DNA of 64,000 nt from Heptranchias perlo (Eukaryota). Positions 20,155-49,532 of the stretch are shown piece after piece. Under the pieces are notes generated by a model. It saw only the letters and a program-made list of their open reading frames with translations, was not told the origin of the DNA and ran no database searches. The translations under genes were made by a program, and so were the position numbers. Each line of letters opens with the position of its first letter. Within the stretch, counting starts at the first letter, position 1. The stretch lies in contig NW_027139591.1 of assembly GCF_035084215.1 (NCBI RefSeq), forward strand, positions 1 through 64,000. The letters run 5' to 3'.

Positions 20155-23100
20155 TGGAACCATACAAAAGATACAGCACAGAAGGGGCCATTCGGCCCAT
20201 CGTGTCCGTGCCGGCTCGAAGAACAACCAGGTGCCCATTCTAATCCCACCTTCCAGCACCCGGTCCGTAGCCCTGCAGCTTACAGCACTTTAGATGCAGG
20301 TCCAGGTACTTTTTAAAAGAGTTGAGGGTCCCTGCCTCTACCACCAATTCGGGCAGCGAATTCCATACACCCACCACCCTCTGGGTAAAAGTGTTTTTCC
20401 TCATGTCCCCTCTAATCCTTCTGCCAATCAGCTTAAATCTATGTCCTCTAGTTCTTGAACTCTCCTCTCGGTGAAACAGGTACTTCCTGTCTACTCTATC
20501 TGGGCCCCTCATAATTTTGTACACCTCAATCAAGTCTCCCCTCAGCCTCCTCTGCTCCAAGGAAAACAACCCCAGCCTATCCAATCTCTCCTCCTAGCTG
20601 CAATTTTCAAGCCCTGGCAACATTCTTGTAAATCTTCTCTGCACTCTCTCCAGAGCAATTACGTCCTTCCTGTAATGTGGTGACCAGAACTGCGCACAAT
20701 ACTCCAGCTGTGGCCTTACCAGCATTTTATACAGTTCCATCATTACATCCCTGATTTATTATTCTATGCCTCTGCTAATAACGGAGATCATTCTGTATGC
20801 CTTCTTCACAACCTTATCTACCTGTACTGCCACCTTCAGGGACCTGTGCACATGCACTCCAAGGTCTCTCACTTCCTCTACCCCTCTCAATATATTCCCG
20901 TTTACTGCGTATTCCCTTTTAATGTTTGCCCTCCCTAAGTGCATTACCTCACACTTCTCCAGGTTGAACTCCATTTGCCACTTTTCCGCCCACTCCACCA
21001 ACCCATTGATATCTTCTTGGAGTCTACAGCTATCCTCTTCACTATCAACTGCACGGCCAATTTTTGTCGTCTATAAATTTGCCAATCATGCCCCCTACAT
21101 TCAAGTCCAAATCATTAATATATACCACAAACAGCAAGGGACCCAACACTGAGCCTTGTGGCACACCACTGGAAACGGATTTCCATTCTCAAAGACATCC
21201 ATCGACTTTTACCATTTGTTTCCTGTTACTGAGCCAATTTTGGATCTAATTCACCACATTTCCCTGTATCCCATGGGCTTTTACCTTTCTGACCAGTCTG
21301 CCATGTGGGACCTTGTCAAATGCCTTACTAAAATCCATGTGGACATCACTCTCATCAATCCTCCTTGTCACTTCCTCAAAGAGTTTAATCAGATTTGTAA
21401 GGCATGACCTTCCCTGAACAAATCCATGCTGACTATCCCTGATTAAACCATGCCTTTCCAAGTGACAGTTTATTCTATCTCTCAGTATTGATTCTAATAG
21501 TTTGCCCACCACCGAGGTAAGACTGACCGGCCTATAATTGTTCGGCCTTTCCCTCGTACCCTTTTTAAACAACGGTACTATGTTGGCAGTCTTCCAGTCC
21601 TCCGGTACCTCCCCTGTATCTGGTGAGGATTGGAAAATGATCCTCAGAGCATCCGCTATTTCCTCCCTGGCTTCCTTCAATAGCCTAGGAAACAATCCAT
21701 CCGGCCCTGGTGACTTATCAAATTTCAAGGATTCCAGTCTCTCTAGTACTTCCTCTCTCGTTATGTTTATTTTATCCAATATTTCACACCTCTCCTCTTT
21801 AACGACTACGTCCAGATCATCCCTTTCCCTTATGAATACAAAGACAAAATATTCATTTAAAACCCTACCCACATTCTCTGCTTCTACACACAAGTTACCC
21901 TTATCATCCCTGATAGGTCCCACCTTTTCCTCAGCTATCCTCTTGTTCTTAATGTACTGATAAAACATCTTTGGGTTTTCTTTAATCTTACTCGTTAATA
22001 TTTCTTCATGCCTGCTCTTTGCTTTCCTTATTTCCTTTTTTACGTCATCCCTGTACTTTCTATACTCCTCCAGGCTTTCTGCAGTATTTAGTTTTCTGTG
22101 ACAGTCATAATCTTTCTTTTCCTGCTTTATCTTGCCCCGTATACTTCTAGACATCCAGGGGGCTCTAAATTTGGCAGTGCCACCCTTTTTCTTTGAGGGG
22201 ACGTGTCTGCATTGTACCCGTAGAATTTCACTTTTTAGTGCCTCCCACTGGCTTGCCACTGATTTCTCCTCAAGGAGTTGTGTCCAGTCCACTTCTGCCA
22301 AATCACCTCTAAGTTCTGTAAAATTTGCCTTCCCCCAATTTAAAACATTTACTCCTGATTTAACACTGTCCTTTTCCATAATAATGCTAAAACTAACTGA
22401 ATTGTGGTCACTATCCCCATTATGGTCACCCACTGTCACTTCACCCACTTGCCCATCTTCATTTCCCAGGACTAAATCTAGAATTGCATCCCCTCTTGTT
22501 GGGCTTGTCATGTACTGGCTAAAAAAGTTCTCCTGGACACCAATCAAGAATTTTGCGCCCTCTGTGCCCCTCACACTGTTTGAATCCCAGTTGATGTTAC
22601 GGTGGTTGAAGTCCCCTACTATTATTGCCCTCTTATTTTTGCACTCAGAAATTTGCCTACATATTTGTTCTTCTATCTCCCTTTCGCTATTCGGGGGTCT
22701 AGAGTACACTCCTAGTAGTGTGACTGCCCCTTTTTTATTCCTTAGCTCAACCCATACGGCCTCGATTGATGATCCATTTCGCATATCATCCCTTCTCACA
22801 ACTCTAATTGATTCTTTAACCAATAATGCTACCCCCCTCCTTTTATATCACCCACTCTATCCTGCTTGAACACTCTATATCCAGGGATATTGAGCTGCCA
22901 ATTATCCCCCTCTTTAAGCCAGGTTTCCATTCTAGCAATGATATCATGCTGCCACGTGTCTATCTGTGCCCTTAGCTCATCTGCTTTGTTTGTAATACTC
23001 CTTGAATTGAAGTATATACCCTTTAACCCCGTCAAATTCCTGTGCTGAACACTATGTAACCTTTGCTTTTTTGCATTTCTGAGTTGCTAACTACGTCACT

Positions 23101-27416: not shown

Positions 27417-27677
27417 ATTTCCACATCCTCGCATTTTACTACATACTGAGCCGTGGCGGGGCCGAGATGCCCGAGTACAGCTTGGTCGCGATGCTCGATG
27501 ACTATGAGATAGTGTATTTCGACAGCACCCTGCAGCGGACTGTGCCCAGACAGCAGTGGATGGCCGACTCCTTCGACAACCATCACTGGGACGCCATCGC
27601 CATCACAATGGCGGGGTTCCATGGTCTGGTCAGAGGAAACGCCGAGATATTTTACCGACAGCAACACGGTGCCTCGA
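27417..27677 (+). CDS. MHC class I-like heavy chain, alpha1 exon (nonclassical)
   Basis: ctgcag/ acceptor and /gtgagt donor; 261 bp, phase 1-1. xFHILAFYYILSRGGAEMPEYSLVAMLDDYEIVYFDSTLQRTVPRQQWMADSFDNHHWDAIAITMAGFHGLVRGNAEIFYRQQHGAS has the class I alpha1 motifs H-x-L, PE, LDD..I.YFDS, PR..WM and WD. Confidence 0.93.
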
Positions 27678-27739
27678 GTGAGTATCCTCACAGAGCCGGT
27701 GCAGCTATCGACTGACAGGAGGAAAGGATTTGTATCCAT

Positions 27740-30340
27740 ATAGAGCCTTATCCTGTCTCGGAGAAATGTCCCGAACCACTTTACACCCATTAAATGACTT
27801 GGGATGACCTGGTCATTGGCACTATCTGGGAGTAACATGGCAGACATTTTCAGCACAGCAAATGGCAATGAGATGATTGATTTGTTCATCTGTTTTTATT
27901 GGTGTGGATTGAGGGAGAAATGGGAGCAATTGGTTCTTTTTATGTTCATTTGAACAGGAAGACGGGGCCTCGATTTAACGTCTCATCTGAAGGACGGCAT
28001 CTCCGACAGTGCATCACTCCCTCAGTACTGCCCCTCCGACAATACATCACTCCCTCAGTACTGCCCCTCCGACAATGCATCACTCCCTCAGTACTGCCCC
28101 TCCGACAATGCATCACTCCCTCAGTACTGCCTCTCCGACAATGCATCACTCCCTCAGCACTGACCCTCCGACAATGCATCACTCCCTCAGTACTGCCTCT
28201 CCGACAATGCATCACTCCCTCAGTACTGCCCCTCCGACAATGCATCACTCCCTCAGTACTGCCTCTCCGACAATGCATCACTCGCTCAGTACTGCCCCTC
28301 CGACAATGCATCACTCCCTCAGTATTGCCTCTCCGACAATGCATCACTCCCTCAGTACTGCTCCTCCGACAATGCATCACTCCCTCAGTATTGCCTCTCC
28401 GACAATGCATCACTCCCTCAGTATTGCCTCTCCGACAATGCATCACTCCCTCAGTACTGCCTCTCCGACAATGCATCACTCCCTCAGTATTGCCTCTCCG
28501 ACAATGCATCACTCCCTCAGTACTGCCTCTCCGACAATGCATCACTCCCTCCGTACTGCCTCTCCGACAATGCATCACTCCCTCAGTATTGCCTCTCCGT
28601 CAGTGCAGCACTCCCTCAGTACTGCCCCTCCGTCAGTGCAGCACTCCCTCAGTACTGCCCCTCCGACAGTGCATCACTCCCTCAGTACTGCCTCTCGGAC
28701 AGTGCATCACTCCCTCAGTACTGCACCTCCGACAGTGCATCACTCCCTCAGTACTGCCTCTCTGACAGTGCATCACTCCCTCAGTACTGCCCCTCCGACA
28801 ATACATCACTCCCTCAGTACTGCCCCCCGACAGTGCAGCACTCCCTCAGTACTGCCTCTCTGACAGTGCATCACTCCCTCAGTACTGCCCCTCCGACAGT
28901 GCAGCGCTCCCTCAGTACTGCCCCTCCGACAGTGCAGCGCTCCCTCAGTACTGCCCCTCCGACAGTGCAGCACTCCCTCAGTACTGCCTCTACGTCAGTG
29001 CAGCGCTCCCTCAGTACTGCCCCTCCGACAGTGCAGCACTCCCTCAGTACTGCCCCTCCGTCAGTGCAGCTCTCCCTCAGTACTGACCCTCCGACAGTGC
29101 AGCTCTCCCTCAGTACTGACCCTCCGACAGTGCATCACTCCCTCAGGACTGCCCCAACGTCAGTGCAGCTCTCCCTCAGTACTGCCCCGACGTCAGTGCA
29201 GCTCTCCCTCAGTACTGACCCTCTGAAAGTGCATCACTCCCTCAGTACTGCCCCTCCAACAGTGCATCACTCCCTCAGTACTGCCTCTCTGACAGTGCAT
29301 CACTCCCTCAGTACTGCCCCTCCGACAATACATCACTCCCTCAGTACTGCCCCCCGACAGTGCAGCACTCCCTCAGTACTGCCTCTCTGACAGTGCATCA
29401 CTCCCTCAGTACTGCCTCTCCGACAGTGCATCACTCCCTCAGTACTGCCCCTCCGACAGTGCAGCGCTCCCTCAGTACTGCCCCTCCGACAGTGCAGCGC
29501 TCCCTCAGTACTGCCTCTCCGACAGTGCAGCGCTCCCTCAGTACTGCCCCTCCGACAGTGCAGCACTCCCTCAGTACTGCCTCTCCGACAGTGCAGCGCT
29601 CCCTCAGTACTGCCCCTCCGACAGTGCAGCACTCCCTCAGTTCTGCCTCTCCGACAGTGCAGCGCTCCCTCAGTACTGCCCCTCCGACAGTGCAGCACTC
29701 CCTCAGTACTGCCTCTCCGACAGTGCAGCGCTCCCTCAGTACTGCCCCTCCGACAGTGCATCACTCCCTCAGTACTGCCCCCCCGACAGTGCAGCGCTCC
29801 CTCAGTACTGCCCCTCCGACAGTGCAGCACTCCCTCAGTACTGCCTCTCCGACAGTGCAGCGCTCCCTCAGTACTGCCCCTCCGACAGTGCATCACTCCC
29901 TCAGTACTGCCCCTCCGACAGTGCAGCGCTCCCTCAGTACTGCCCCTCCGACAGTGCAGCGCTCCCTCAGTACTGCCCCTCCGACATTGCGGCGCTCCCT
30001 CAGTACTGCCCCTCCGACAGTGCATCACTCCCTCAGTACTGCCCCTCCGACAGTGCAGCGCTCCCTCAGTACTGCCCCTCCGACATTGCGGCGCTCCCTC
30101 AGTACTGCCTCTCCGACAGTGCAGCACTCCCTCAGTACTGCCCCTCCGACAGTGCAGCACTCCCTCAGTACTGCCCCTCCGACAGTGCAGCACTCCCTCA
30201 GTACTGCCCCTCCGACGGTGCAGCACTCCCTCAGTACTGCCCCTCCGACAGTGCAGCACTCCCTCAGTACTGCACTGGAGTGTCAGCCCGGATTATGCGC
30301 TCAAATCTCTGGAGTGGGGCCTGAAACCACGACCTTCTTA
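27740..30340 (-). mobile_element. Deu-domain tRNA-SINE with an internal 33-bp tandem expansion (28000-30270, ~68 copies)
   Basis: Head remnant near 30300-30340; Deu-like segment (rc of gggcctcgatttaacgtctcatctgaaggacggcatc) at 27965-28000; unit CTCCGACAGTGCAGCACTCCCTCAGTACTGCCC. Confidence 0.85.
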
Positions 30341-31190
30341 CTCTCACCTCTGGTTCAGAAGGTTGTGGGTTCAAGACCCACTCCAGAGACTGGAGCACAA
30401 AATCTCGGCTGGCACTCCCAGTGCAGCACTGAGGGAGGGGCAGCACTGTGGGAGGGGCAGCACTGAGGGAGGGGCAGCACTGAGGGAGGGGCAGCACTGA
30501 GGGAGGGGCAGCACTGAGGGAGGGGCAGCACTGTGGGAGGGGCAGCACTGTGGGAGGGGCAGCACTGAGGGAGGGGCAGCACTGAGGGAGGGGCAGCACT
30601 GTGGGAGGGGCAGCACTGAGGGAGGGGCAGCACTGAGGGAGGGGCAGGACTGAGGGTGGGGCATCACTGTGGGAGGGGCAGCACTGTGGGAGGGGCAGCA
30701 CTGTGGGAGGGGCAGCACTGAGGGAGGGGCAGCACTGAGGGAGGGGCAGCACTGAGGGAGCGCAGCACTGTGGGAGGGGCAGCACTGAGGGAGGGGCAGC
30801 ACTGAGGGAGCGCAGCACTGAGGGAGGGGCAGCACTGTGGGAGGGGCAGCACTGTGGGAGGGGCAGCACTGAGGGAGGGGCAGCACTGTGGGAGGGGCAG
30901 CACTGTGGGAGGGGCAGCACTGTGGGAGGGGCAGCACTGAGGGAGGGGCAGCACTGTGGGAGGGGCAGCACTGTGGGAGGGGCAGCACTGTGGGAGGGGC
31001 AGCACTGAGGGAGGGGCAGCACTGTGGGAGGGGCAGCACTGAGGGAGGGGCAGCACTGAGGGAGGGGCAGCACTGAGGGAGGGGCAGCACTGTGGGAGGG
31101 GCAGCACTGTGGGAGGGGCAGCACTGTGGGAGGGGCAGCACTGAGGGAGGGGCAGCACTGAGGGAGGGGCAGCACTGAGGGATTTGATGT
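30341..31190 (+). mobile_element. Second Deu-SINE head with a 17-bp tandem expansion (CAGCACTGAGGGAGGGG, ~45 copies)
   Basis: B-box-like ggttcaagaccc then ccagagactggagcacaaaatct; array at 30420-31180. Confidence 0.8.
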
Positions 31191-31639
31191 GAGCACCTTG
31201 AACGTTGGAATGAAATCATCGCTGCCACTTGTTTCTCCTCTTCTAAAGCTGCGTTGCCAGGGTTACTAACAAACAGATGAAATCAGGACAGGCGGGTCCA
31301 TCAAGCCTGTCCTGTCTTGGCACGGTGAAACAACACACACACACACACCATCAGCACCCTCTCCCTCCCACAGTCACACAATCTCCTGGGAGAGGCCAAC
31401 GAAAGAGGATGAAACTGAGGCCAAGTTAGGAAAGCAAACACTCTGGGAGATTCCTCTGCGACCCCCCCCCCCAGGGAATCGAGGAAGGTGCAGGAGACCA
31501 CAGTGTCTGATATCACTGGTCCCCATTAACCCCACACACCTCCTATAACTCGAGATACTTTCTATTGGTCGCCAGTCCCCTTTCCAACACTTGCAGTCCA
31601 CCCACACACACTGTGCATGCAGGCAACTTGTTCATCGAA

Positions 31640-33000
31640 TCACAGAAAGGTTACAGCACGGAAGGAGGCCATTCGGCCCATCGAGTCCGTGCTGGCTCTA
31701 TGCAAGAGCAATCCAGCTAGTCCCTCTCCCCTGCCCTATCCCTGTAGCCCTGCAAATTTTTTCCTTTCATTACTTATCCAGTTCCCTTTTGAAGTCCACG
31801 ATTGAATCTGCCTCCACCATCCCCTCGGGCCGTGCATTCCAGATCCTAACCACTCGCTGTGTAAAAAAGTTTTTCCTCAAGTCACCTTTGGCTCTTTTGC
31901 CAATCACCGTAAATCTATGACTTCTGGTTTTTAACCCTTCCATCAATGGGAATAGTTTCTTCATGATTTTAAACACCTCGATCAAATCTCCTCGCAACCG
32001 TCTCTGTTCCAAGGAGAACAACCCGAGCTTCTCCAGTCTATCCACATAACTAAAGTCCCTCATCCCTGGAATCATTCTGGTAAATCAATTCTGCACCCTC
32101 TCCAAGGCCTTCACATCCTTCCTAAAGTGCGGTGCCCAGAACTGGACACAATACTCCAGTTGTGGCCGAACCAGTGTTTTATAAAGGTTCATCATGACTT
32201 CCATACTTTTGTACTCTATGCCTCTATTTAAAAAGCCCAGGATCCAGGATGTTTTTTTAACCGCTTTCTGAACCTGCCCTGCTACCTTGAATGATTTGTG
32301 CACATGTACACCCAGATCTCTCTGTTCCTGTACCCTTTTAGAGTTGTGCCCTCTAGTTTATATTGCCTCTCCTCGTTCTTCCTACCAAAATGTATCACTT
32401 CGCATTTTAAGTACAGCTAGCTTTTCAAGTACCTCTTCTATATCAATTTTTAGCCCATCCAGTATCTTAACTGTATCTTCCTTTACTGAGACTCTGGCAG
32501 CATCTTCTTCCTTGGTAAAAATAGATGCAAAGTGATCATTTAGTACTTTGGCCATCTCCTCTGCCTCCATGAGTAGATCTCCTTTATGGTCCCTAATCGG
32601 CCCCACCCCTCCTCTTACTACCTGTTTACTGTTTCGATGCCTATAGAAGACTTTTGGATTCCCTTTTATGTTGGCCGCCAGTCTGTTCTCAGACTCTCTC
32701 TTTGCCCCTCTTATTTCCTTTTTCACTTCCCCTCTGAACTTTCTATATTCTGCCTGGTCCTCACTTGTATTATCAACCTGACATCTGTCATATGCTCCTT
32801 TTTTCTGTTTCATCTTACTCTCTATCTCTTTTGTCATCCAGGGAGCTCTGGCTTTAGTTGCCCGACCTTTCCCCCTCGTGGAGACTGTACCCGAACCATC
32901 TCCTCCTTAAAGGCCGCCCGCTGTTCAATTGCAGTTTTGCCTGACAATCTTTGATTCCGATTTACCCGGGACCAGATCTGTTCTCATCCCACTGAAATTC
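31640..33000 (-). mobile_element. CR1 fragment with internal deletion
   Basis: NIKGNPKVFYR..VGPIRD; YKTLVRPQLEYCVQFWAPH; LGLFSLEQRRLRGDLIEVFKI. Confidence 0.9.
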
Positions 33001-33104
33001 CAGAGATCGATGACTCTCTGTGACAATCTAACCTATTGCTAAGGTTAAAGTCCAAGACAGCAGGACATAAATGGAACCTCAACGTAACACAGCTGCTTAG
33101 GAGC

Positions 33105-33612
33105 ATCGAAAGAGGAAGAGGCCATTCAGCCCCTCGAGCCTGCTCCACCATTCATTTATATCATGGCTAATCTGCACCGTAACTCCATTTTCCAGCCTTT
33201 GCTTCCTATCCATCGATACCCTTACCTAACAAAAATTTAACAATCTCAGTCTTGAAAGCTCCAATGGGCCCCCAGCATCCCACAGCCTTTTGGGGGAGAG
33301 AGTTCCTGATTCCCACTCCCCTTTGTGTGATAAAGTGCTTCCTGATTTCACTCCTAAATGGCCTGGCTCTAAATCTAAGATCTTGATTCCCCCACCTGAG
33401 GAAATAGTCCCTCTGGAATTCCCTCCCTAAACCTCTCCACCTCTCTCTCCTCCTTTAAGATGCTCCTTCAAACCTACCTCTTTGTCCAAGCTTTTGGTCA
33501 CCTGTCCTAATATCTCCTTATGTGGCTCAGTGTCAAATTTTGTTTGTCAAGTGCCTTGTGATGTTTTACTCCGTGAAAGGCGCTATATAAATGCAAGTTG
33601 TTGTTGTTGTAT
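33105..33612. mobile_element. CR1 3' tail (minus, 33105-33410) abutting an L2 3' end (plus, 33410-33612) with a (TTG)n tail
   Basis: Similar to 17900-18200 and to 16340-16540 respectively. Confidence 0.75.
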
Positions 33613-33665
33613 GTACCCGATCGAACCCTTTTCACATTTTCAATTGACTTGAGTTGTTTTTCCAG

Positions 33666-33941
33666 GTGTTTTCTTTGTCCAGGGAATGTGTGGCTGCGAA
33701 CTGAACAGCGACAATTCCACAGAGGGGTTTATAAAGTTTGGATATGACGGGGAGGACGCGTATGTTTTTGACAAGGACAGATTGAGTTGGATTGCGGTGA
33801 ATCCAGAGTTCCAGACTTTAGCAGACCGGTGGAATGCGAACACCTTCATGAACAAATACTTCAAGACCCTGTTGGAAAAGGACTGTGTGAAGTGGCTGCT
33901 GATATACCTTCGGGCTGGGCGAGAAGCACTACAGAGGAAAG
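33666..33941 (+). CDS. MHC class I-like heavy chain, alpha2 exon
   Basis: tttttccag/ acceptor and /gtacct donor; 276 bp, phase 1-1. SVFFVQGMCGCELNSDNSTEGFIKFGYDGEDAYVFDKDRLSWIAVNPEFQTLADRWNANTFMNKYFKTLLEKDCVKWLLIYLRAGREALQRK has C101/C164, GYDGED, W133, W147, W167 and Y171. Confidence 0.96.
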
Positions 33942-33984
33942 GTACCTCGAGCGAGCGGGAACTGGAGGTGCTGGACAGGCAAAG

Positions 33985-34230
33985 TTTATATTCCCAGTCT
34001 GCACCTGGCCTCAGTACCCCTTGGGGTGGGTGGGGTCGGGATGGGGGAGATAATCGGGCAGGTGACCTAAATCCGATGACCTACTCAGTCTCCCCGGCTG
34101 GAAAGCCCGTGCGTGTTGACATCGGGTGAGAACGGGGTTCAACTAAGTTGTAATACCCCCATGGTTGAATAGTGTCCTGGTCCTCACTGTGAAGGCTCAC
34201 TCGTGAACACTGGGTGCTTGTGTGCGTTAC
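33985..34230 (+). mobile_element. Degenerate LF-SINE-like fragment
   Basis: ggcctcagtaccccttggg...gctggaaag...gacatcgggtgagaac...catggttgaatag resembles the LF-SINE body as recalled; not database-checked. Confidence 0.45.
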
Positions 34231-34548
34231 CGGAACGTGACCCGTTACATGGAATTTACAACACAGAAACAGGCCATTCGGCCCAACAGGTCTATGCCAG
34301 TGTTATTGCTGCACCCTCCCTCCTTCATCTCCCCCGATCAGCATATCCTTCTATTCCTTTCTCCCTCATGTGTTTATCCAGCTTCCCCTTAAAGGCATCT
34401 GTGCTATTCGCCTCAACCACTCCCTGTGAGAGCGAGCTCCACATTCAAACCACTCTCTGAGTTTCTCCTGAATTCCCCATTGGATTTATTAGTGACTCTC
34501 TTATATTTATGGCCCCTCGTTCAGGCCTCTGCCACAAGTGGAAACATC

Positions 34549-36207
34549 GGGGGAAAAATTTGGATGTGGCCGTTTTTGGGCGGGGGCAGCGCGATGTGCT
34601 TTACCCCGTGTCCAATGGTCCCGGCGCAGGCAGGATGCAAGTTTCGACCCACCCGAGGACCGACCTGCGATCAGCGTTCCATCCCAGGCCTTGCACCTGG
34701 AATCAATGCAATTCACACTTTCCACCACCAGAGGGAGGGCAATCTCTTAAAGGGAGGATGTTTGTTGGAAATCTCTTAAAGGTAGCTGGTACCTGTTATT
34801 TGCTGAAAATAACAGTCTGCACGGAGTCTGAACGGAGATCAGACATAGCACATGTAAAACACGATGCAGGTCCCATCCCTATGTTTACACACTGATGAGT
34901 TATGTTAAAACATTGAATAAAGGTTGCGCAATACTAAATCCCACATCCTCCAATCTGCACAACAGACCTCACCAATCTGCCGATCTGAGTTGGTACCAGG
35001 CCTGTGAGAGTACGTGCACCAAGGTTCTCTGCTGATGCACTAGAGGCCTTGGTGCAAGAGGTGGACAGAAGGAGGGACATCCTATATCCACAGTGGGGGG
35101 AAGGGAGGGGGGGGGGCAGAGACCCTCCAGACATATACTCAAAAGCCAGTGGGAGGCAACGGGGGACGAAGTCAATGCCAGGCTCACAGCATCATGAACA
35201 TGGATGCAGTGCAGGAAGAAGTTCAATGCTTTGACATGAGTGGTCAAGGTGAGTGAGGTCAACTGTCAAGTGGTGTCTCCAAACAACTGCTCCACACACT
35301 ACACCCCCATCACCCACATACCAACAAACTCTTTCCATCAGTACTCAACTCTTCCCATCAGATGCTTCCTCTCACCCTTACACATTACCACTGTTTCAAG
35401 CCGCCCACCCACAACTCACAGGCCACACGCACTGGCAGCTATTCAACCATGACAGGCACATCACCCAGACACAGAAGGTGGCGCATATCAAGAGGCAGCA
35501 AGTGGCAGTGACATTCAGCCCCTCGAGCCTGTTCCACCATTCAATGAGATCATGGTGGACCTGTGACCTAACTCCATATACCCACCTTAGCCCCATATCC
35601 CTTAATACCCTTGGTTCACAGAAATCTATCAATCTCAGATTTAACATTCACAAGTGAGCTGGCATCAACTGCTGTCTGTAGAAGAGTGTTCCAAACATCT
35701 CCCACCCTTTGTGTGTAGAAGCATTTCCTAACTTAACACCTGCACATCCTGGCTCTAAATGTTTCGCGATGTCCCCGCGTCCTAGTATTCAAATGTAGGA
35801 GACCTCCGAAAACAGTTATGAATGTTTCGGCAGCCAGAAGCAATAATCCAGCCACTAACCTGTAAATCCTGCATGGTCCCTTTAAATAGAGCCGGTGGGG
35901 GGTCCTCCAGGAACTGTAAGACACGTTCAGATGGTCGGGGTTAAGATTATGCGTTGAGTTGAGCGTTAAGTCCCGAAATGGTGTCTGTCACTTTAAATCA
36001 GCGTTGCACACTGATTGAAGCCATTTTCTCCCTACTTTACATGATTCCAGTGTTCGTTATCTGCGCCTGCACTAACTCCTATACCAAGATGGCGTCTGGC
36101 GCACGTCACGCTGGAAATGTGCGTGCGCATCCAAGACGCCATCTTGGATGTCGGAGAGGCCGTCTAGCGCCGAAACAACGGGCGCTACACGGCCCTATTT
36201 AGCGCCC
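34549..36207 (+). mobile_element. Harbinger-type DNA transposon remnant carrying a decayed Myb/SANT-like exon, inserted in a CR1 tail
   Basis: RAPRFSADALEALVQEVDRRRDILYP...QWE...EVNA....TWMQCRKKFNAL at 35004-35250. GGG...CCC imperfect TIRs; ATC on both sides (34546-48 and 36208-10). The CR1 sequence resumes exactly across the insertion. Confidence 0.75.
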
Positions 36208-36418
36208 ATCTTCCCTACGTCTATCCTATCAAACCCTTTCATAATCTTAACGACCTCTATCAGGTGACCCCTCAGCTGAACTCCGGTGAACTCCAGCTGT
36301 CTCTCAGCATCAGTCATCTGCCTTCAGGCCGAGAAAATTGATGGTGGTGGGCGGGGAAGAAATGAAGGCAAAAGAAGAGAACTTGTCACCGATTGTACTC
36401 TTTGTTTAAATCTCTCAG

Positions 36419-36691
36419 TCGCCCCTGAGGTGTTTATTGGGAAGAGGAGTGACGGGGACAGAGTGCTAAGGGTCTCCTGCCTTGTGTCGGGGTTCTACCC
36501 CTGGGCCATCGAGGTGACTTGGTTGGGGAATGGCGAGGAGATCGCTGACATTGAATCCAGTGACGTGCTGCCCAACCAGGATATGACCTATCGGGTACTG
36601 AAAACGATCGAGCTGAGTGGAGACGACAGGAAGAGCTACTCCTGTCATATCGAGCACGCCAGCCTCCTGCGGGGGATCAACGTACCCTGGG
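36419..36691 (+). CDS. MHC class I-like heavy chain, alpha3 (Ig C1) exon
   Basis: tctctcag/ acceptor and /gtgagt donor; 273 bp, phase 1-1. VAPEVFI...VSCLVSGFYPWAIEVTW...VLPNQDMTY...YSCHIEHASL...VPW. Confidence 0.97.
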
Positions 36692-36719
36692 GTGAGTGGC
36701 AAATTGGGGGGGGGGGCTC

Positions 36720-38155
36720 AGGGTCTTTCCCTGTGTCTCGGGGGGGCCGCAGGGTACTTCCTGGAACTCTGGGTCCTTCCCCGATTCTCGGGAGGGCCGC
36801 AGGGCTTTTCCCCGTGTCTTGGGGGCCCACAGGGTCCTTCCCCATGCCTCTGGGTCATTCCCCGTGCCTCTGGGTCATTCCCCGTGCCTCTGGGTCATTC
36901 CCTGTGCCTCTGGGTCATTCCCTGTGCCTCTGGGTCATTCCCTGTGCCTCTGGATCATTCCCTGTGCCTCTGGGTCATTCCCCGTGCCTCTGGGTCCTTC
37001 CCCATGCCTCTGGGTCCTTCCCCATGCCTCTGGGTCATTCCCCATGCCTCTGGATCATTCCCCGTGCCTCTGGGTCATTCCCCGTGCCTCTGGGTCCTTC
37101 CCTGTGCCTCTGGGTCCTTCCCTGTGCCTCTGGGTCATTCCCCGTGCCTCTGGGTCATTCCCTGTGCCTCTGGGTCATTCCCTGTGCCTCTGCGTCCTTC
37201 CCTGTGCCTCTGGGTCATTCCCCGTGCCTCTGCGTCCTTCCCTGTGCCTCTGGGTCCTTCCCTGTGCCTCTGGGTCCTTCCCTGTGCCTCTGGGTCCTTC
37301 CCTGTGCCTCTGGGTCATTCCCTGTGCCTCTGGATCATTCCCCGTTCCTCTGCATCCTTCCTCCTGTCTCTGCATCCTTCCCTGTGCCTCTGGGTCATTC
37401 CCTGTGCCTCTGGGTCATTCCCTGTGCCTCTGGGTCATTCCATGTGCCTCTGGATCATTCCCTGTGCCTCTGGGTCATTCCCTGTGCCTCTGGGTCCCTC
37501 CCCGTGCCTCTGGGTCCCTCCCCGTGCCTCTGGGTCCCTCCCCGTGCCTCTGGGTCCTTCCCCGTGCCTCTGGGTCCTTCCCTGTGCCTCTGCATCCTTC
37601 CCTGTGCCTCTGGATCCTTCCCCGTGCCTCTGGGTCCTTCCCCGTGCCTCTCGGTCATTCCCTGTGCCTCTGCATCATTCCCCGTGTCTCAGGGTCCTTC
37701 CCCGTGCCTCTGGATCATTCCTCGTACCTCTGCATCCTTCCCTGTGCCTCTGGGTCCTTCCTCGTGCCTCTGGGTCCTTCCCCGTGCCTCTCGGTCATTC
37801 CCTGTGCCTCTGCATCCTTCCCTGTGCCTCTGGGTCCTTCCTCGTGCCTCTGGATCATTCCTCGTACCTCTGCATCCTTCCCTGTGCCTCTGGGTCCTTC
37901 CTCGTGCCTCTGGGTCCTTCCTCGTGCCTCTGGGTCCTTCCCTGTGTCTCAGGGTCATTCCCTGTGCCTCTGCATCCTTCCCTGTGCCTCTGGGTCATTG
38001 CCGTGCCTCAAGGTCCTTCCTTGTGTCTCTGCGTCCTTCCCCACTTCTCTGGATCCTCCCCTGTGACTCTAGATCATTCCCTGTGACTCGAGGTCATTCC
38101 CTGTGCCTCAAGGTCATTCCCTGTGCCGCAGGGTCCTTCCCCGTGTCTCTTCATC
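36720..38155. repeat. 20-bp minisatellite CCCTGTGCCTCTGGGTCATT (~65-70 copies) in the alpha3-TM intron
   Basis: Unit read directly; degenerate at both ends. Confidence 0.96.
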
Positions 38156-38159
38156 CTTC

Positions 38160-39405
38160 GGGGGAGCGCTGCACTGTCAAAGGGGCAGTACTGAGGGAGA
38201 GCGGCACTGTCGGAGGGTCAGTACTGAGGGAGAGCTGCACTGTCAAAGAGGCAGTACTGAGGGAGTGCTGCACTGTCGGAGGGTCAGTACTGAGGGAGAG
38301 CGGCACTGTCGGAGGGTCAGTACTGAGGGAGTGCTGCACTGTCGGAGGGTCAGTACTGAGGGAGAGCTGCACTGTCGGAGGGTCAGTACTGAGGCAGAGC
38401 GGCACTGTCAAAGGGGCAGTACTGAGGGAGAGCGGCACTGTCGGAGGGTCAGTACTGAGGGAGAGCGGCACTGTCGGAGGGTCAGTACTGAGGGAGAGCG
38501 GCACTGTCGGAGGGTCAGTACTGAGGGAGTGCGGTACTGTCGGAGGGTCAGTACTGAGGGAGAGCGGCACTGTCGGAGGGTCAGTACTGAGGGAGAGCGG
38601 CACTGTCGGAGGGTCAGTACTGAGGGAGAGCGGCACTGTCGGAGGGTCAGTACTGAGGGAGAGCGGCACTGTCGGAGGGTCAGTACTGAGGGAGTGCGGT
38701 ACTGTCGGAGGGTCAGTACTGAGGGAGAGCTGCACTGTCTGAGGGTCAGTACTGAGGGAGTGCGGTACTGTCGGAGGGTCAGTACTGAGGGAGCGCTGCA
38801 CTGTCTGAGGGACAGTACTGAGGGAGTGCTGCACTGTCTGAGGGTCAGTACTGAGGGAGTGCTGCACTGTCGGAGGGTCAGTACTGAGGGAGCGCTGCAC
38901 TGTCGGAGGGGCAGTACTGAGGGAGTGCGATACTGTCGGAGGGTCAGTACTGAGGGAGAGCTGCACTGTCGGAGGGTCAGTACTGAGGGAGAGCTGCACT
39001 GTCGGAGGGTCAGTACTGAGGGAGTGCTGCACTGTCGGAGGGTCAGTACTGAGGGAGTGCGGCACTGTGGGAGGTGCCATCTTTCGGATGAGATGTTAAG
39101 TCAAGGCCCCAACTGCCATCTCAGGTGGAGGTGAAACATCCCATGACATTATTTCGAGGATGAGCAGGAGAGTTATCCCCGGTGTCCTGGCCAATATTTA
39201 TCCCTCAATAAACATGAATATAAAAAAAGTGATCTGATCATTATCACATTGCTGGTTGTGGGATCTTGCTGTGCGCAAATTGGCTGCCGGGTTTTCCACA
39301 TCACAACAGTGACGACACTTCAAAATAGTTTAATTGGCTGTAAAGTGCTTTGAGACATCCTGAGCTCATGAAAGGTGTTATATAAATACACCTCTTCCTT
39401 TTCTC
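38160..39405 (+). mobile_element. Headless Deu-SINE with a 33-bp expansion (38160-39070, ~27 copies)
   Basis: The array is followed by ggaggtgccatctttcggatgagatgttaa, gatcttgctgtgcgcaaattggctgcc and an L2-like tail. Confidence 0.85.
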
Positions 39406-39584
39406 TTTCAATAGCACATGCCCACCTTTCATGGTGTTACACTGAGCAAAATCCCCTTCAATTTACCCAATAGCACAATTGGTAAATGACCTGCCCAATC
39501 TGGAACAAAGACGGACAGACCAGAGGGTCCCAGATTTAACCCCTGGCCTCTGCTGAGTGGGAGGATTTCAATTGGAGAGACTGC

Positions 39585-40760
39585 CCTTTCCCCATAGCCC
39601 TGTCACAATCCAAACTAACCCCACTGCCCCACTCTCTCCCCATAGCCGTGTATCAATCCCAAACTAATCCCACTGCCCCACTCTCTCCCCATAGCCCTGT
39701 CACAATCCAAACTAACCCCACTGCCCCACTCTCTCCCCATAGCCCTGTATCAATCCCAAACTAACCCCACTGCCCCACTCTCTCCCCATAGCCCTGTATC
39801 AATCCCAAACTAATCCCACTGCCCCACTCTCTCCCCATAGCCCTGTGTCAATCCCAAACTAACCCCACTGCCCCACTCTCTCCCCATAGCCGTGTATCAA
39901 TCCCAAACTAATCCCACTGTCCCACTCTCTCCCCATAGCCCTGTCACAATCCAAACTAACCCCACTGCCCCACTCTCTCCCCATAGCCCTGTATCAATCC
40001 CAAACTAATCCCACTGCCCCACTCTCTCCCCATAGCCCTGTATCAATCCCAAACTAATCCCACTGCCCCACTCTCTCCCCAGAGCCCTGTATCAATCCCA
40101 AACTAATCCCACTGCCCCGCGCCCTCCCCATAGCCCTGTCTCAATCCAAACTAACCCCACTGCCCCACTCTCTCCCCATAGCCCTGTATCAATCCCAAAC
40201 TAATCCCACTGCCCCGCGCCCTCCCCATAGCCCAGTATCAATCCCAAACTAATCCCACTGCCCCACTCTCTCCCCAGAGCCCTGTATCAATCCCAAACTA
40301 ATCCCACTGCCCCGCGCCCTCCCCATAGCCCTGTCTCAATCCAAACTAACCCCACTGCCCCACTCTCTCCCCATAGCCCTGTATCAATCCCAAACTAATC
40401 CCACTGCCCCGCGCCCTCCCCATAGCCCTGTATCAATCCCAAACTAATCCCACTGCCCCTCGCCCTCCCCATAGCCCTGTATCAATCCCAAACTAATCCC
40501 ACTGCCCCACTCTCTCCCCATAGCCCTGTATCAATCCCAAACTAAACCCACTGCTCTGTATCTCCCCATAGCCCTGTATCAATCCCAAACTAATCCCACT
40601 GCCCTACTCTCTCCCCATAGCCCTGCATCAATCCCAAACTAATCCCACTGCCCCACTCTCTCCCCATCGCCCTGCATCAATCCCAAACTAATCCCACTGC
40701 CCCACTCTCTCCCCATAGTCCTGTATCAATCCCAAACTAACCTCACTGCTCTGTATCTCC
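39585..40760. repeat. 49-bp minisatellite CCATAGCCCTGTATCAATCCCAAACTAATCCCACTGCCCCACTCTCTCC (~24 copies), probably derived from a CR1 tail
   Basis: Period 49 (e.g. 39981 to 40030); followed by CR1-tail-like sequence at 40780-40900. Confidence 0.93.
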
Positions 40761-41224
40761 CTGAGCTTCGAATGTTTAGCCACCCTTCCCTTAAAACATA
40801 CAATGGTCTCTGTCTCAACCACTCCCTGTGGCCAAAAAATTGCAATCTGTAACCATCATCTGTCAAAAGAAATGGCCAATAGTTTCCCCTCCTTGGCATT
40901 GCACTGTTATTTTACAGTGTGTAATTCTGCAGTCTCTATCCCTGATATCAGGTGGTTCGTGTGTTGATTTAATCTGCAGAGTACAGGAATTGCACTTTAA
41001 ACTCTGTAACTAGTCAGGAACTGCCCTGTTTCTGAGAATAATCAATGGTAACTAGTTGTATTCTGCTTATTATTTGTAATGGAGCCAGTTAGGCATGTTT
41101 CAATCCATTTTTAATTGTTCATTACCCTATCAGACATGTACTGTACCAGTGTGCAGCTTAATGAAGCACCTAATGAAATCATTAGGAAATAATTATTGAT
41201 CAACATCATTTTAAAATTCAATAG

Positions 41225-41415
41225 AGAGGGCGACAGAAGGAGGCACGAATGTCGGGATTGGGACTGGAGCAGCAGCCGTCTCACTCACTCTTCTTGGCAT
41301 CATCGTCGGAATTGGCTTCTGGAGCAAGAGGCAAAACAGGAGAGACCAGCAGAGCCCATCAGAGACCAGCAAAACCCATCAGAGACCAGTAGAAACTGGC
41401 AGAGTCCTGCCGTGA
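41225..41415 (+). CDS. MHC class I-like heavy chain, connecting peptide/TM/cytoplasmic exon
   Basis: ttcaatag/ acceptor, phase 1. ERATEGGTNVGIGTGAAAVSLTLLGIIVGIGFWSKRQNRRDQQSPSETSKTHQRPVETGRVLP* (TGA at 41413-41415). Confidence 0.85.
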
Positions 41416-41600
41416 TGAGCAGAGACCGGCAGAGTCCTGCAGTGACCGGCAGAGTCCTGCAGTGACCGGCAGAGACCAGTAAGACCGGCAGAGTTCTGCA
41501 GTGACCAGCAGAGAACATCAGAGACCAGAAGGGACTGGCAGAGACCAGCAGAAAGCGACAGAGTCCAGCAGAGACAGACAATGTCAGAGACGAGCAGAGA
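41341..41600. repeat. Degenerate 10/20-bp repeat (AGAGACCAGC/AGAGTCCTGC/AGTGACCGGC) overlapping the class I tail and 3' UTR
   Basis: Decamer periodicity is visible directly. Confidence 0.8.
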
Positions 41601-42924: not shown

Positions 42925-45900
42925 AAGTACTTGCATTTACATAGTGCCTTTCACGACCATAGGTCGTCCCAAACCTTTACAGCCAATGAAGTACTTTTGA
43001 AGTGTAGTCACTGTTGTCATGTAGTAAACATGGCAGCCGATTTACACTCAGCAAGATCCCACAAACAGCAACGTGATAATGAGCAGATCATCTGTTTTTC
43101 AGTGATGTTGGTTGAGGGATAAATATTGGCCAGGACACCAGGGAGAACAGGATACAGCACAAATCCTCGCCATGCTTCCCACCACCTCCAGGGGCTCGGC
43201 CATCAGGTTACATCGTCCACCGCGAATAGCAGGTGAATCCCCCTCGCACGAACCCGTCTACCACCACCCAACGGTGTCAGCTATGGCTCAGTGGGTGGTC
43301 GAAATAGTGTTATGGGATCTTTTACGTCTGCCAGAGACGTTAGACAGGGCCTCGGTTTAACATCTCATCCGAAAGATGGCACCCCGTCAGTGCAGCACTC
43401 CCTCAGTACTGTCCCTCAGATAGTACAGCACTCCCTCAGTACTGACCCTCAGATAGTACAGCACTCCCTCAGTACTGACCCTCCGACAGTGCAGCGCTCC
43501 CTCAGTACTGACCCTCCGACAGTGCAGCGCTCCCTCAGTGCTGACCCTCCGACAGTGCAGCGCTCCCTCAGTCCTGTCCCTCTGACAGTGCAGCGCTCCC
43601 TCAGTACTGCCCCTCAGATAGTACAGCACTCCCTCAGTACTGACCCTCCGACAGTGCAGCGCTCCCTCAGTACTGACCCTCCGACAGTGCAGCGCTCCCT
43701 CAGTGCTGACCCTCCCACAGCACAGCGCTCCCTCAGTGCTGACCCTCCGACAGTGCAGCGCTCCCTCAGTGCTGTCCCTCCGACAGTGCAGCGCTCCCTC
43801 AGTACTGTCCCTCCGACAGTGCAGCGCTCCCTCAGTACTGTCCCTCCGACAGTGCAGTGCTCCCTCAGTACTGTCCCTGCGACAGCGCAGTGCTCCCTCA
43901 GTACTGCCCCTCCGACTGTGCAGCACTCCCTCAGTACTGCCCCTCCGACAGCGCAGCACTCCCTCAGTACTGCCCCTCCGACTGTGCAGCACTCCCTCAG
44001 TACTGCCCCTCCGACAGCGCAGCACTCCCTCAGTACTGCCCCTCCGACTGTGCAGCACTCCCTCAGTACTGCCCCTCTGACAGTGCAGTGCTCTCTCAGT
44101 ACTGCCCCTCCGACTGTGCAGCACTCTCTCAGTCCTGACCCTCCGACTGTGCAGCACTCTCTCAGTCCTGCCCCTCCGACTGTGCAGCACTCCCTCAGTA
44201 CTGCCCCTCCGACTGTGCAGCACTCTCTCAGTACTGCCCCTGCGACAGCGCAGTGCTCTCTCAGTACTGCCCCTGCGACAGCGCAGCACTCCCTCAGTAC
44301 TGCCCCTCCGACTGTGCAGCACTCCCTCAGTACTGCCCCTCTGACAGTGCAGTGCTCTCTCAGTACTGCCCCTCCGACTGTGCAGCACTCTCTCAGCACT
44401 GACCCTCCGACACCGCAGTGCTCTCTCAGCACTGACCCTCCGACACCGCAGTGCTCTCTCAGTACTGCCCCTGCGACAGCGCAGTGCTCTCTCAGTACTG
44501 CCCCTGCGACAGCGCAGTGCTCCCTCAGTACTGCCCCTCCGACAGCGCAGTGCTCCCTCAGTACTGCCCCTGCGACAGCGCAGTGCTCTCTCAGTACTGC
44601 CCCTGCGACAGCGCAGTGCTCCCTCAGTACTGCCCCTCCGACAGCGCAGTGCTCCCTCAGTACTGCCCCTGCGACAGCGCAGTGCTCCCTCAGTACTGCC
44701 CCTCCGACAGCGCAGTGCTCTCTCAGTACTGCCCCTCCGACAGCGCAGTGCTCCCTCAGTACTGCCCCTGCGACAGCGCAGTGCTCCCTCAGTACTGCCC
44801 CTCCGACAGCGCAGTGCTCCCTCAGTACTGCCCCTCCGACAGCGCAGTGCTCCCTCAGTACTGCCCCTCCGACAGCGCAGTGCTCTCTCAGTACTGCCCC
44901 TCCGACAGCGCAGTGCTCCCTCAGTACTGCCCCTCCGACAGCGCAGTGCTCTCTCAGTACTGCCCCTCCGACAGCGCAGTGCTCTCTCAGTACTGCCCCT
45001 CCGACAGCGCAGTGCTCCCTCAGTACTGCCCCTCCGACAGCGCAGTGCTCTCTCAGTACTGCCCCTCCGACAGCGCAGTGCTCTCTCAGTACTGCCCCTC
45101 CGACAGCGCAGTGCTCTCTCAGTACTGCCCCTCCGACAGCGCAGTGCTCCCTCAGTACTGCCCCTCCGACAGCGCAGTGCTCCCTCAGTGCTGCCCCTCC
45201 GACAGCGCAGTGCTCCCTCAGTACTGCCCCTCCGACAGCGCAGTGCTCTCTCAGTACTGCCCCTCCGACAGCGCAGTGCTCCCTCAGTACTGCCCCTGCG
45301 ACAGCGCAGTGCTCCCTCAGTACTGCCCCTCCGACAGCGCAGTGCTCTCTCAGTACTGCCCCTCCAACAGCGCAGTGCTCCCTCAGTACTGCCCCTGCGA
45401 CAGCGCAGTGCTCCCTCAGTACTGCCCCTCCGACAGCGCAGTGCTCTCTCAGTACTGCCCCTCCGACAGCGCAGTGCTCCCTCAGTACTGTCCCTCCGAC
45501 AGCGCAGTGCTCCCTCAGTACTGCCCCTCCGACAGCGCAGAGCTCTCTCAGTACTGTCCCTCCGACAGCGCAGTGCTCCCTCAGTACTGCCCCTGCGACA
45601 GCGCAGTGCTCTCTCAGTACTGCCCCTGCGACAGCGCAGTGCTCCCTCAGTACTGCCCCTCCGACAGCGCAGTGCTCCCTCAGTACTGCCCCTGCGACAG
45701 CGCAGTGCTCCCTCAGTACTGTCCCTCCGACAGCGCAGTGCTCCCTCAGTACTGCCCCTCTGACTGTGCAGCACTCCCTCAGTACTGCCCCTCCGACAGC
45801 GCAGAGCTCTCTCAGTACTGTCCCTCCGACAGTGCAGTGCTCCCTCACTACTGCACTCGGTGTGTCAGGCTAGATTTTGTGCTCAAGTCTCTGAAGTGGG

Positions 45901-48500: not shown

Positions 48501-48744
48501 GCCACAGGAGATAGAGGATCCATAAAGAAAATCACATCAATTGGGGAATATTTTCCTCTGTGTGTTAAGGTACAGAAAGATTCTTCTATTACTAAACTGG
48601 GGAGGTTTATAAGAAAATCTGTCTTTCACCTGAGTTCAAATACAACCCAGATGAAAGGTCGATAAAGGTTTCATGTGAGGAGAGTTTAGGGCCGTCTCAA
48701 GCAATTCTTGTTATTTGTGGGTCCATAGGGGATAGGAATTAATT

Positions 48745-49532
48745 GGGGAGTGGGCCTCAGTCGGGTCAGAGTGGGGAGTGGGATTCAGTCGGGTCAGAGT
48801 GGGGAGTGGGACTCAGTCGGGTCAGAGTGGGGAGTGGGCCTCAGTCGGGTTAGAGTGGGGAGTGGGACTCAGTCGGGTCAGAGTGGGGAGTGGGGCTCAG
48901 TCGGGTGTGAGTGGGGAGTGGGGCTCAGTCGGGTCAGAGTGGGGAGTGGGACTCAGTCGGGTCAGAGTGGGGAGTGGGGCTCGGTCGGGTCTGAGTGGGG
49001 AGTGGGATTCAGTCGGGTCAGAGTGGGGAGTGGGGCTCAGTCGGGTCAGAGTGGGGAGTGGGATTCAGTCGGGTCAGAGTGGGGAGTGGGACTCAGTCGG
49101 GTCAGAGTGGGGAGTGGGATTCAGTCGGGTCAGAGTGGGGAGTGGGGCTCAGTCGGGTCAGAGTGGGGAGTGGGGCTCAGTCGGGTCAGAGTGGGGAGTG
49201 GGACTCAGTCGGGTCAGAGTGGGGAGTGGGACTCAGTCGGGTCAGAGTGGGGAGTGGGACTCAGTCGGGTCAGAGTGGGGAGTGGGGCTCTGTCGGGTCA
49301 GAGTGGGGAGTGGGATTCAGTCGGGTCAGAGTGGGGAGTGGGGCTCTGTCGGGTCAGAGTGGGGAGTGGGGCTCAGTCGGGTCAGAGTGGGGAGTGGGTC
49401 TCAGTCGGGTCAGAGTGGGGAGTGGGGCTCAGTCGGGTCAGAGTGGGGAGTGGGGCTCAGTCGGGTCAGAGTGGGGAGTGGGGCTCAGTCGGGTCAGAGT
49501 GGGGAGTGGGATTCAGTCGGGTCAGAGTGGGA
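48745..49532. repeat. 28-bp G-rich minisatellite CAGAGTGGGGAGTGGGACTCAGTCGGGT (~28 copies)
   Basis: Unit read directly; three G-tracts per unit. Confidence 0.96.

Follow-up and report, generated by a model that had tools for sequence, protein, structure and literature searches.

A nonclassical MHC class I gene of Heptranchias perlo with an apolar groove, placed in a shark and ray sister lineage of UGA

[quoted passage not shown] Four exons of this gene and a predicted transmembrane (TM) helix are located as follows (aa, amino acids; Ig, immunoglobulin).

27417-27677, plus strand: alpha1 exon, 261 nt; codons 27419-27676, 86 aa; Pfam MHC_I
33666-33941, plus strand: alpha2 exon, 276 nt; codons 33668-33940, 91 aa; Pfam MHC_I
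36419-36691, plus strand: alpha3 (Ig C1) exon, 273 nt; codons 36421-36690, 90 aa; Pfam C1-set
41225-41415, plus strand: connecting peptide/TM/cytoplasmic exon, 191 nt, 62 aa; TGA at 41413-41415
41251-41322, plus strand: predicted TM helix, 24 mostly apolar residues followed by basic residues (translation)

The exon borders and splice signals were read directly and checked by script; the acceptors are AG, the donors are GT and the junctions are phase 1 throughout. The open chain consists of 1+86+1+91+1+90+1+62 = 333 codons, and the four GT-AG, phase-1 exons with a chain of about 333 aa claimed in the original prediction thus agree with the borders, the frame, the Pfam domains and the RefSeq models described below. 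The alpha2 acceptor is the AG at 33664-65; a nearer AG at 33681-82 would break the frame. When the exons were searched one by one in Pfam, alpha2 matched MHC_I with an E-value of 1.8e-18 and alpha3 matched C1-set with 1.3e-16; alpha1 matched MHC_I with 3.9e-6 and 27.0 bits, slightly below the cut-off of 28.3, and the fourth exon gave no significant match. The gene has the platform, C1-set domain and TM segment of the MHC class I superfamily, the phase-1 plan of one exon per domain, and the disulfide cysteines C101-C164 and those of alpha3. Its product would be a type I membrane glycoprotein with the usual class I layout, in which an alpha1/alpha2 platform is followed by an Ig-like alpha3, a TM helix and a short repeat-derived tail.

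The translations of the four exons are exact substrings of two RefSeq models, P0243 and P0239, spaced by one split-codon residue each; the gene is therefore already an automatic RefSeq model and is new only as the description of a lineage. P0243 has 350 aa including a leader, and P0239, which is marked partial, has 332 aa and begins at the first alpha1 residue. As a whole protein, P0243 matches MHC_I with 96.6 bits and C1-set with 57.4 bits. Its AlphaFold2 (AF2) model has the canonical class I fold with a mean predicted local distance difference test score (pLDDT) of 70, or about 80 across the ectodomain, and a low-confidence helix at residues 305-321 in the TM region. In the window, tblastn with the four exon peptides matches only the exons themselves, with no paralogous class I exons, indicating that this is the sole class I gene in the 64 kb.

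The gene belongs to a lineage present in both rays and sharks. A HMMER scan with the alpha1 exon against 1.84 billion representative proteins gave 143 matches at E <=0.001, including sixteen at <=1e-10 and one at <=1e-30, the little-skate RefSeq model P0001 (70% identical); the non-shark alpha1 matches that were looked up are teleost multi-domain models. A search with P0001 gave 79 proteins at E <=1e-20, of which the top group comes from 11 further shark and ray species and is 54-72% identical to the skate protein, after which identity drops to about 34%. The lineage is generally represented by one gene per species and rarely by two (10 of the 13 species have one cluster each), and all of it bears the automatic RefSeq name "MHC class I-related gene protein-like" (MR1-like).

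Among solved structures, the closest relative is the Protein Data Bank (PDB) entry 9ch4, entitled "Crystal structure of shark nonclassical MHC CLASS I, UGA" (released 2026-03-18), which the sequence library labels only "Ig-like domain-containing protein". The same title, but with "UFA", is carried by 8gm8 (released 2024-11-27), an entry reached by folding the basking-shark protein P0029. The alpha1 exon scores 83 bits against 9ch4 (E 1.2e-22), 43 against 8gm8, 42 against a teleost chain, 41 against shark UAA (6lup) and 27-29 against MR1, whereas the alpha2 exon scores 79 bits against MR1, without gaps, 66 against 9ch4 and 50 against HLA-A2. For the whole protein of P0161, another H. perlo model, the scores are 241 bits for 9ch4, about 181 for MR1, 174 for a teleost chain, about 171 for HLA-A2 and 148 for 6lup. 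In a profile search (A1) in which only the 8000 candidates sharing most words were scored, neither MR1 nor UGA was among the 21 proteins found.

Trees were built on 270 alpha1-alpha3 columns with P0243 standing in for the window: a quick tree of 86 rows (one of the 87 sequences collected, P0018, being dropped for low coverage) and a careful IQ-TREE tree of 50 rows chosen from those. In the IQ-TREE tree, the 16 rows of the present lineage form a clade (support 100/100) that divides into a ray and a shark sub-clade; the five UGA-lineage rows also form a clade (100/100), and the two clades are joined with 99/96. Three Callorhinchus genes come next (96/88). The UFA orthologue stands outside the clade of these three groups on a long branch, its position being unsure. 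In the quick tree, the lineage lies outside a multicopy clade of 54 rows. The phylogeny of alpha1-3 called for in the original prediction thus places the gene beside UGA, on a tree confined to cartilaginous-fish class I sequences. The three Callorhinchus (elephant shark) models, P0188, P0197 and P0203, lie on one 49-kb contig and bear the RefSeq names MR1-like, ZAG-like and F10-like; judging from the tree, they may correspond, on the chimaera side, to the common ancestor of this lineage and UGA.

The gene is not a member of UFA, as alpha1 scores only 43 bits against 8gm8 and 8gm8 is not among the best 60 whole-protein PDB matches; the UFA orthologue P0029, by contrast, reaches 305 bits in a full-length match and falls outside the clade. 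Nor is it an orthologue of UGA: the UGA lineage is a separate clade, the sawshark UGA orthologue P0004 scores 466 bits against 9ch4 compared with 241 here, and both lineages co-occur in Pristiophorus and Leucoraja. In the little skate, P0001 and a UGA-type model (P0150) lie on one 127-kb contig with consecutive accessions. The separate clades and the co-occurrence within species indicate that the lineage is neither UFA nor UGA but the paralogous sister of UGA. Thus, of the cartilaginous-fish nonclassical lineage originally proposed to be UFA-like or new, the nonclassical character and the source hold, the relation to UFA does not, and the placement becomes that of a separate sister of UGA. On the sequences compared, the lineage is judged to have arisen before sharks and rays diverged. 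UDA reportedly keeps eight of the nine peptide-end anchors and therefore does not fit a protein with two of nine (see below). UEA is known from sharks only. In the accessible text of a survey of these genes, UEA and UBA are described as multicopy families (PMC10751288). Both would belong to the 54-row clade of the quick tree. The exclusions of UBA-UEA and of UCA should be regarded as softer, because no named reference sequences entered the comparison.

Residues of the groove were numbered as in HLA-A2 by using HMMER coordinate ranges together with our own placement of landmarks (W51, W60, C101, Y118, W147 and C164). At the nine positions that anchor the peptide ends (7, 59, 84, 123, 143, 146, 147, 159 and 171), the protein has F7, H59, Q84, A123, L143, R146, W147, L159 and Y171. 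Only W147 and Y171 are kept, as predicted from the letters, and the replacements are mostly apolar; a classical class I molecule of the UAA type does not fit, since the one classical-like sequence of the set, P0175, has 9/9 anchors. The predicted groove residues L24, I63, M67, F70, L73, V74, I80, F81, I114, F116, Y155 and F156 were all recovered on the alignments, and the sole residue that differs is F152, which is M or F depending on the placement of a one-residue gap in alpha2. Two further features of alpha2 distinguish the lineage.

33713-33721, plus strand: N-S-T sequon in alpha2, kept in 15/15 lineage rows of alignment A1; N-T-T in Mustelus
33689-33691, plus strand: TGT codon of an extra cysteine at HLA-A2 position 99, two residues before disulfide C101

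The alpha2 sequon and the loss of the N86 sequon (H86) had both been noticed in the original prediction and are borne out. Position 99 is C in 16/16 lineage members and F in 6/6 UGA-lineage sequences, and the lineage alignments contain no second conserved unpaired cysteine that could pair with C99. By analogy with solved class I molecules, the C99 side chain would point up from the floor into the groove. The beta2-microglobulin-contact residues Q96, D119, G120 and D122 are present as predicted, and Q96, G120 and D122 are kept in the lineage; the protein most likely pairs with beta2-microglobulin.

The predicted hydrophobic character of the groove is well matched by a sequence-based Kyte-Doolittle comparison, which ranks it as the most apolar among 86 class I sequences of cartilaginous fish. 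The 16 lineage members, which take ranks 1-16 of 86, have a mean hydropathy of 1.27 (range 1.04-1.47) over the 44 groove positions, compared with 0.50 for UGA-lineage sequences (n=6), 0.39 for Callorhinchus (n=3), 0.28 for the classical-like sequence (n=1) and 0.24 for other class Ib sequences (n=60). Outside the groove, hydropathy is similar in both groups (-0.63 vs -0.86). About two-thirds of the groove lining is apolar, with glycines and small residues in the alpha1 helix and the floor. Large apolar lining residues are conserved from sharks to rays (F7, F70, F81, F113, I114, Y155, F156, L159 and L160), and shark-ray identity is 76% for alpha2, 69% for alpha1 and 58% for alpha3.

Expression was assessed in Logan contigs of four runs of one sample (X1-X4), none of which is on record as RNA. 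The four runs contain 15-29% of the sampled words of 33666-36691, a stretch of which the two exons make up 18%. When their contigs were aligned to 33500-36800, contigs of three of the four runs showed a GT..AG joint that skips 2,477 bases and, after a two-base ambiguity shift, corresponds to 33941 joined to 36419; the splice-junction check asked for in the original prediction is thereby answered for the alpha2-alpha3 joint, in contigs that possibly derive from other copies. One contig of 1,438 letters contains alpha2 from exactly 33666 and alpha3 to exactly 36691, plus 350 and 539 letters off the stretch; such overhangs are as expected from splicing to alpha1 and the leader, and to the TM exon and the 3' untranslated region. 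The only contigs that map inside the alpha2-alpha3 intron are short repeat contigs of extreme depth. The family is transcribed, and its splicing agrees with the model. The 1,438-letter contig has two synonymous alpha2 differences from the window. The synonymous differences seen in run X1 lie at 33715 and 33721, third positions within codons of the N-S-T sequon, and a spliced contig of run X2 shows the same I-to-V change as P0161 at the alpha3 I/V site (36541), indicating that more than one copy or allele is transcribed.

Several copies are in fact annotated in H. perlo. The 90% cluster of P0161 contains 11 H. perlo RefSeq models (P0161 and P0234-P0243) on contigs of seven sizes (76-530 kb), with at least three models on each of two contig sizes (449,286 and 463,596), compared with one per species elsewhere. 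P0161 has three residue differences from the exons of the window. Among the 11 models, alpha1 and alpha2 are nearly invariant (two variable sites), the differences lying in alpha3 and the tail, with variant sites at P0243 positions 238, 239, 332, 338 and 344. The 11-model set could be a real expansion or redundant unplaced scaffolds.

Because seven of the nine anchors are replaced and about two-thirds of the lining is apolar, a hydrophobic-ligand function appears most likely. In this function, the groove would hold a conserved hydrophobic non-peptide (lipid-like) ligand for lymphocyte receptors, as reported for UGA and UFA. In the accessible text of a 2025 review, UDA, UFA and UGA are given as single-copy genes, and crystal structures and mass spectrometry of UFA and UGA are said, as a personal communication, to suggest lipids like those of human CD1d (PMC12562908). 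In what is accessible of the gene survey, UFA is an unpublished CD1-like lineage mapped with UDA and UEA beside the elasmobranch MHC (PMC10751288). Overall, binding of a hydrophobic non-peptide ligand is the best-supported function and a reasonably likely one. The original proposal that the groove binds lipid or small molecules is thus favoured by the anchor loss, the apolar groove and the UGA/UFA precedent, with lipid itself entering only by inference.

Several points weigh against this function or against its assignment to the present locus. What is said of lipids in UGA and UFA comes from a personal communication quoted in a review and not from a published data set, and as the UGA lineage is much less apolar at the same positions, the present lineage need not share its function. 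The groove columns follow the residues of this protein and may put divergent lineages at a disadvantage; the UFA orthologue reaches only 0.22 on them, probably through misalignment. Nor is the groove significantly more conserved than its surroundings: in 11 full-length orthologues, 27/44 groove positions are invariant compared with 63/136 other alpha1/alpha2 positions (Fisher p 0.12). In the model-based view, the groove could be collapsed. The tail contains no tyrosine in translation and therefore lacks the tyrosine-based endosomal motif found in CD1. As for expression, the runs are only guessed to be RNA, and because spliced contigs show two synonymous changes or one coding change relative to the window, other copies may be their source. 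Finally, this copy has no leader exon in the 27.4 kb upstream or elsewhere in the window.

The missing leader bears on whether this locus, as distinct from its lineage, is functional. At the start of the full-length models P0161 and P0243 stands a signal-like leader of 17 residues, which the sawshark orthologue also has. For this leader, tblastn at E 50 across the 64-kb window gave nothing credible, and a six-frame fuzzy search of the window allowing substitutions at 8 of the 17 residues gave nothing. When 12.7-27.4 kb was scanned by rule for the combination of ATG, hydrophobic stretch and phase-1 GT donor, two weak candidates emerged, at 14655-14757 and 16819-16867; both are unlike the real leader, and the former is antisense to a retroelement ORF (open reading frame). 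Intron 1 is therefore longer than 27.4 kb, or else the first exon is missing from this copy. The gene had been called intact; the open four-exon chain accords with that description, but with the leader exon nowhere in the window intactness is unproven.

The copy could accordingly be a 5'-truncated, non-functional duplicate in a recently expanded array, such that the lineage is functional but a locus devoid of a signal-peptide exon makes no secreted or membrane protein. Consistent with this, the leader is present in five of the 11 H. perlo models (at >=90% identity) and absent in six, of which four begin at an internal Met in alpha1, one begins inside the alpha1 helix and one is marked partial; the partial model P0239 is one of the two that are identical to the exons of the window, and the upstream 27 kb is satellite and retroelement debris. 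However, none of the four exons is interrupted, their splice sites fit the consensus and their translations match the full-length P0243 exactly, so that any truncation would be very recent. Intron 1 may also simply exceed 27 kb, the other introns here being 2.5-6 kb and swollen by satellites. Moreover, the leader exon seems hard to find in every genome, because only two of the 15 lineage rows of alignment A1, both from squalomorph sharks, have a signal-like leader, the other 13 having odd N-termini, internal-methionine starts or partial ends; the first exon of the lineage is probably mis-annotated across elasmobranch genomes. Truncation of this copy is thus a possibility to be taken seriously, although on balance a doubtful one.

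Structural comparison places the fold near that of several class I molecules. Foldseek on the AF2 model of P0243 gave UGA 9ch4 as the best match, followed by MR1, which fills ranks 3 onward. Among the matches listed by VIA-align (50 rows), Z-scores are 20.5-22.2 with a root mean square deviation of about 7 A, a value due to a different orientation of alpha3. UGA (22.2), chicken YF1*7.1 (21.5-21.8), chicken CD1-1 (21.3), MR1 (21.3) and HFE (21.2) are effectively tied, and the fold therefore says nothing on ligand class.

This tie includes a molecule that suggests another kind of ligand, as chicken YF1*7.1 holds N-acylated ligands: the groove might bind a conserved hydrophobic or acylated peptide instead of lipid, in the manner of HLA-E/Qa-1 or of YF1*7.1. 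Retention of W147 and Y171 and the conservation of the K146 charge by R146 would suit a peptide, and in sequence the protein resembles peptide-binding class I far more than CD1, of which no chain is among the best 60 PDB matches. Yet seven of nine end anchors are lost, including at both groove ends (Y7F and Y59H at one end; Y84Q, T143L and Y159L elsewhere), and structural matches that all lie within about 1.5 Z units do not discriminate. A peptide ligand is considered unlikely.

HFE and ZAG are also among the tied matches (Z 21.2 and 20.6), and glycines at positions 69, 72 and 76 of the alpha1 helix and 97 of the floor could let the helices close. The molecule might thus bind no ligand and, like HFE, FcRn, ZAG and the MIC proteins, have a closed groove and act as a receptor or ligand of class I shape. 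A large apolar lining kept from sharks to rays, however, is what a ligand pocket looks like, and the sister UGA has been crystallised and is reported, in the accessible part of the review, to hold lipid (PMC12562908), which makes a closed groove quite improbable.

A bolder extension of the hydrophobic-ligand function has several parts. The lineage would be a third, undescribed hydrophobic-ligand class I lineage that has been near single-copy since before the shark-ray split; the invariant C99, which aligns to the MR1 ligand-contact residue I96, would tether ligands covalently by thiol chemistry, as a counterpart of the MR1 lysine Schiff base; and the MR1-like alpha2 would mean that an origin of MR1/UGA-type molecules is older than the split between cartilaginous and bony fish. 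Taken together, these proposals are speculative and have only a slim chance of being right.

Least probable of all is the function implied by the RefSeq name, in which an orthologue or early relative of mammalian MR1 would hold small metabolites in an aromatic, basic pocket: RefSeq labels the whole lineage MR1-like, alpha2 taken alone fits MR1 best of all solved chains (ungapped over 86 residues), and MR1 is second to UGA both for the whole protein and in the Foldseek ranking, but alpha1 fits MR1 weakly in comparison with UGA, the lineage groups with UGA in a tree that contains no MR1 rows, and the pocket itself is replaced. Of the residues that we take to contact the MR1 ligand (R9, S24, K43, Y62, W69, R94, I96, Y152 and W156), the ligand-binding K43 is aligned by HMMER to T, and the other positions read R9->Y, S24->L, Y62->I, W69->F, R94->G, I96->C and W156->L, only Y152 being kept. 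K43 and covalent binding appear in the titles of 4lcw and 4nqc. The RefSeq name thus reflects overall similarity, mainly of alpha2, and not the MR1 mechanism.

Outside the gene, the window consists mostly of satellite arrays and retroelement fragments. Tandem satellite, including a 13.7-kb array at the 3' end, makes up more than half of it. The remaining features, in which arrays and repeats were found by Tandem Repeats Finder (TRF), are as follows (LINE, long interspersed nuclear element).

41337-41575, plus strand: 10-bp-period repeat encoding the end of the cytoplasmic tail and continuing beyond the stop codon
28001-31182, no strand: satellite arrays of 33-bp and 17-bp units, about half of the alpha1-alpha2 intron
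36832-40749, no strand: satellite arrays of 20-, 33- and 49-bp units, most of the alpha3-TM intron
31-12714, 43384-45854, 48744-49531 and 50296-63997, no strand: tandem satellite with units of 25, 57, 33, 28 and 37 bp
21246-22823, minus strand: ORF of 525 aa that, judged by eye, looks like a LINE reverse-transcriptase/endonuclease fragment

Downstream of the stop codon, tblastn finds tail-like repeats in other frames. Orthologue tails have the same motif at very different lengths, the sawshark and white-shark proteins reading through many more repeat units, and in the H. perlo paralogue P0240 the tail terminates in a different frame; changes in tail length seem to arise through slippage of the repeat. 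In TRF, 33-bp arrays with similar-looking consensus units (units unaligned), partly in opposite orientation, occur in intron 1, in intron 3 and downstream of the gene. Several shorter LINE-like fragments lie within 13.7-27.3 kb, the upstream region where a leader exon is expected, and further ORFs are listed at 45.9-50.3 kb.

No paper describing this lineage or citing 8GM8 or 9CH4 was found in a search that left most subscription journals and supplements outside its reach. The lineage may well be known to specialists already, and this gene may already be named in the supplementary gene maps of PMC10751288. Of living animals that have an MHC, sharks and rays are the oldest, and their UFA and UGA molecules, recently crystallised, are said to bind lipids; if this is true, lipid presentation would date back to when adaptive immunity arose. 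The conserved sister lineage of UGA has a more apolar groove, another glycan position and, on the groove floor, a free cysteine that is invariant. This lineage provides a second, independent molecule for testing the age of non-peptide presentation, and the two lineages form a natural pair in which to compare the groove changes that determine the choice of ligand. The "MR1-like" label of these genes in RefSeq should not be taken as MR1 function.

Compared with known class I systems, the gene shares its exon plan, its disulfides and the beta2-microglobulin-contact residues Q96, G120 and D122 with classical shark UAA (6lup), but differs from the UAA type in its anchors and in that alpha1 and alpha2 hardly vary among the H. 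perlo models. CD1 resembles it in having an apolar groove that is devoid of peptide-end anchors, and chicken CD1-1, like YF1*7.1, is among its tied structural matches; unlike CD1, it has a tail devoid of tyrosine and finds no CD1 chain among its best sequence matches, and P0243 scores 28.9 bits against Pfam MHC_I_3, below the cut-off of 35. UFA (8gm8) is likewise an elasmobranch nonclassical class I molecule that lacks the peptide anchors, is named MR1-like in RefSeq and is reported, in the accessible text of the review, to bind lipid (PMC12562908), although it is of a different lineage with a distant alpha1. With MR1, the gene has in common a nonpolymorphic class Ib character, the layout of MHC_I and C1-set domains, the best alpha2 match and the second-best whole-protein match, whereas the covalent lysine, the arginines and most of the aromatic cradle are replaced here and the alpha1 match is weak.

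The nearest system is UGA (9ch4), which is the closest solved relative, with about 40% identity over alpha1-alpha3, and represents the sister clade. Both have the alpha2-helix motif, G69, G76 and G97, A123, L159, Y155 and F156. UGA has Y7, Y59, F143, F99 and Y or F at 122, where the present lineage has F7, H59, L143, C99 and D122. In addition, UGA keeps the N86 sequon, which in this lineage is replaced by one in alpha2, and the UGA groove is less apolar than the groove described here.

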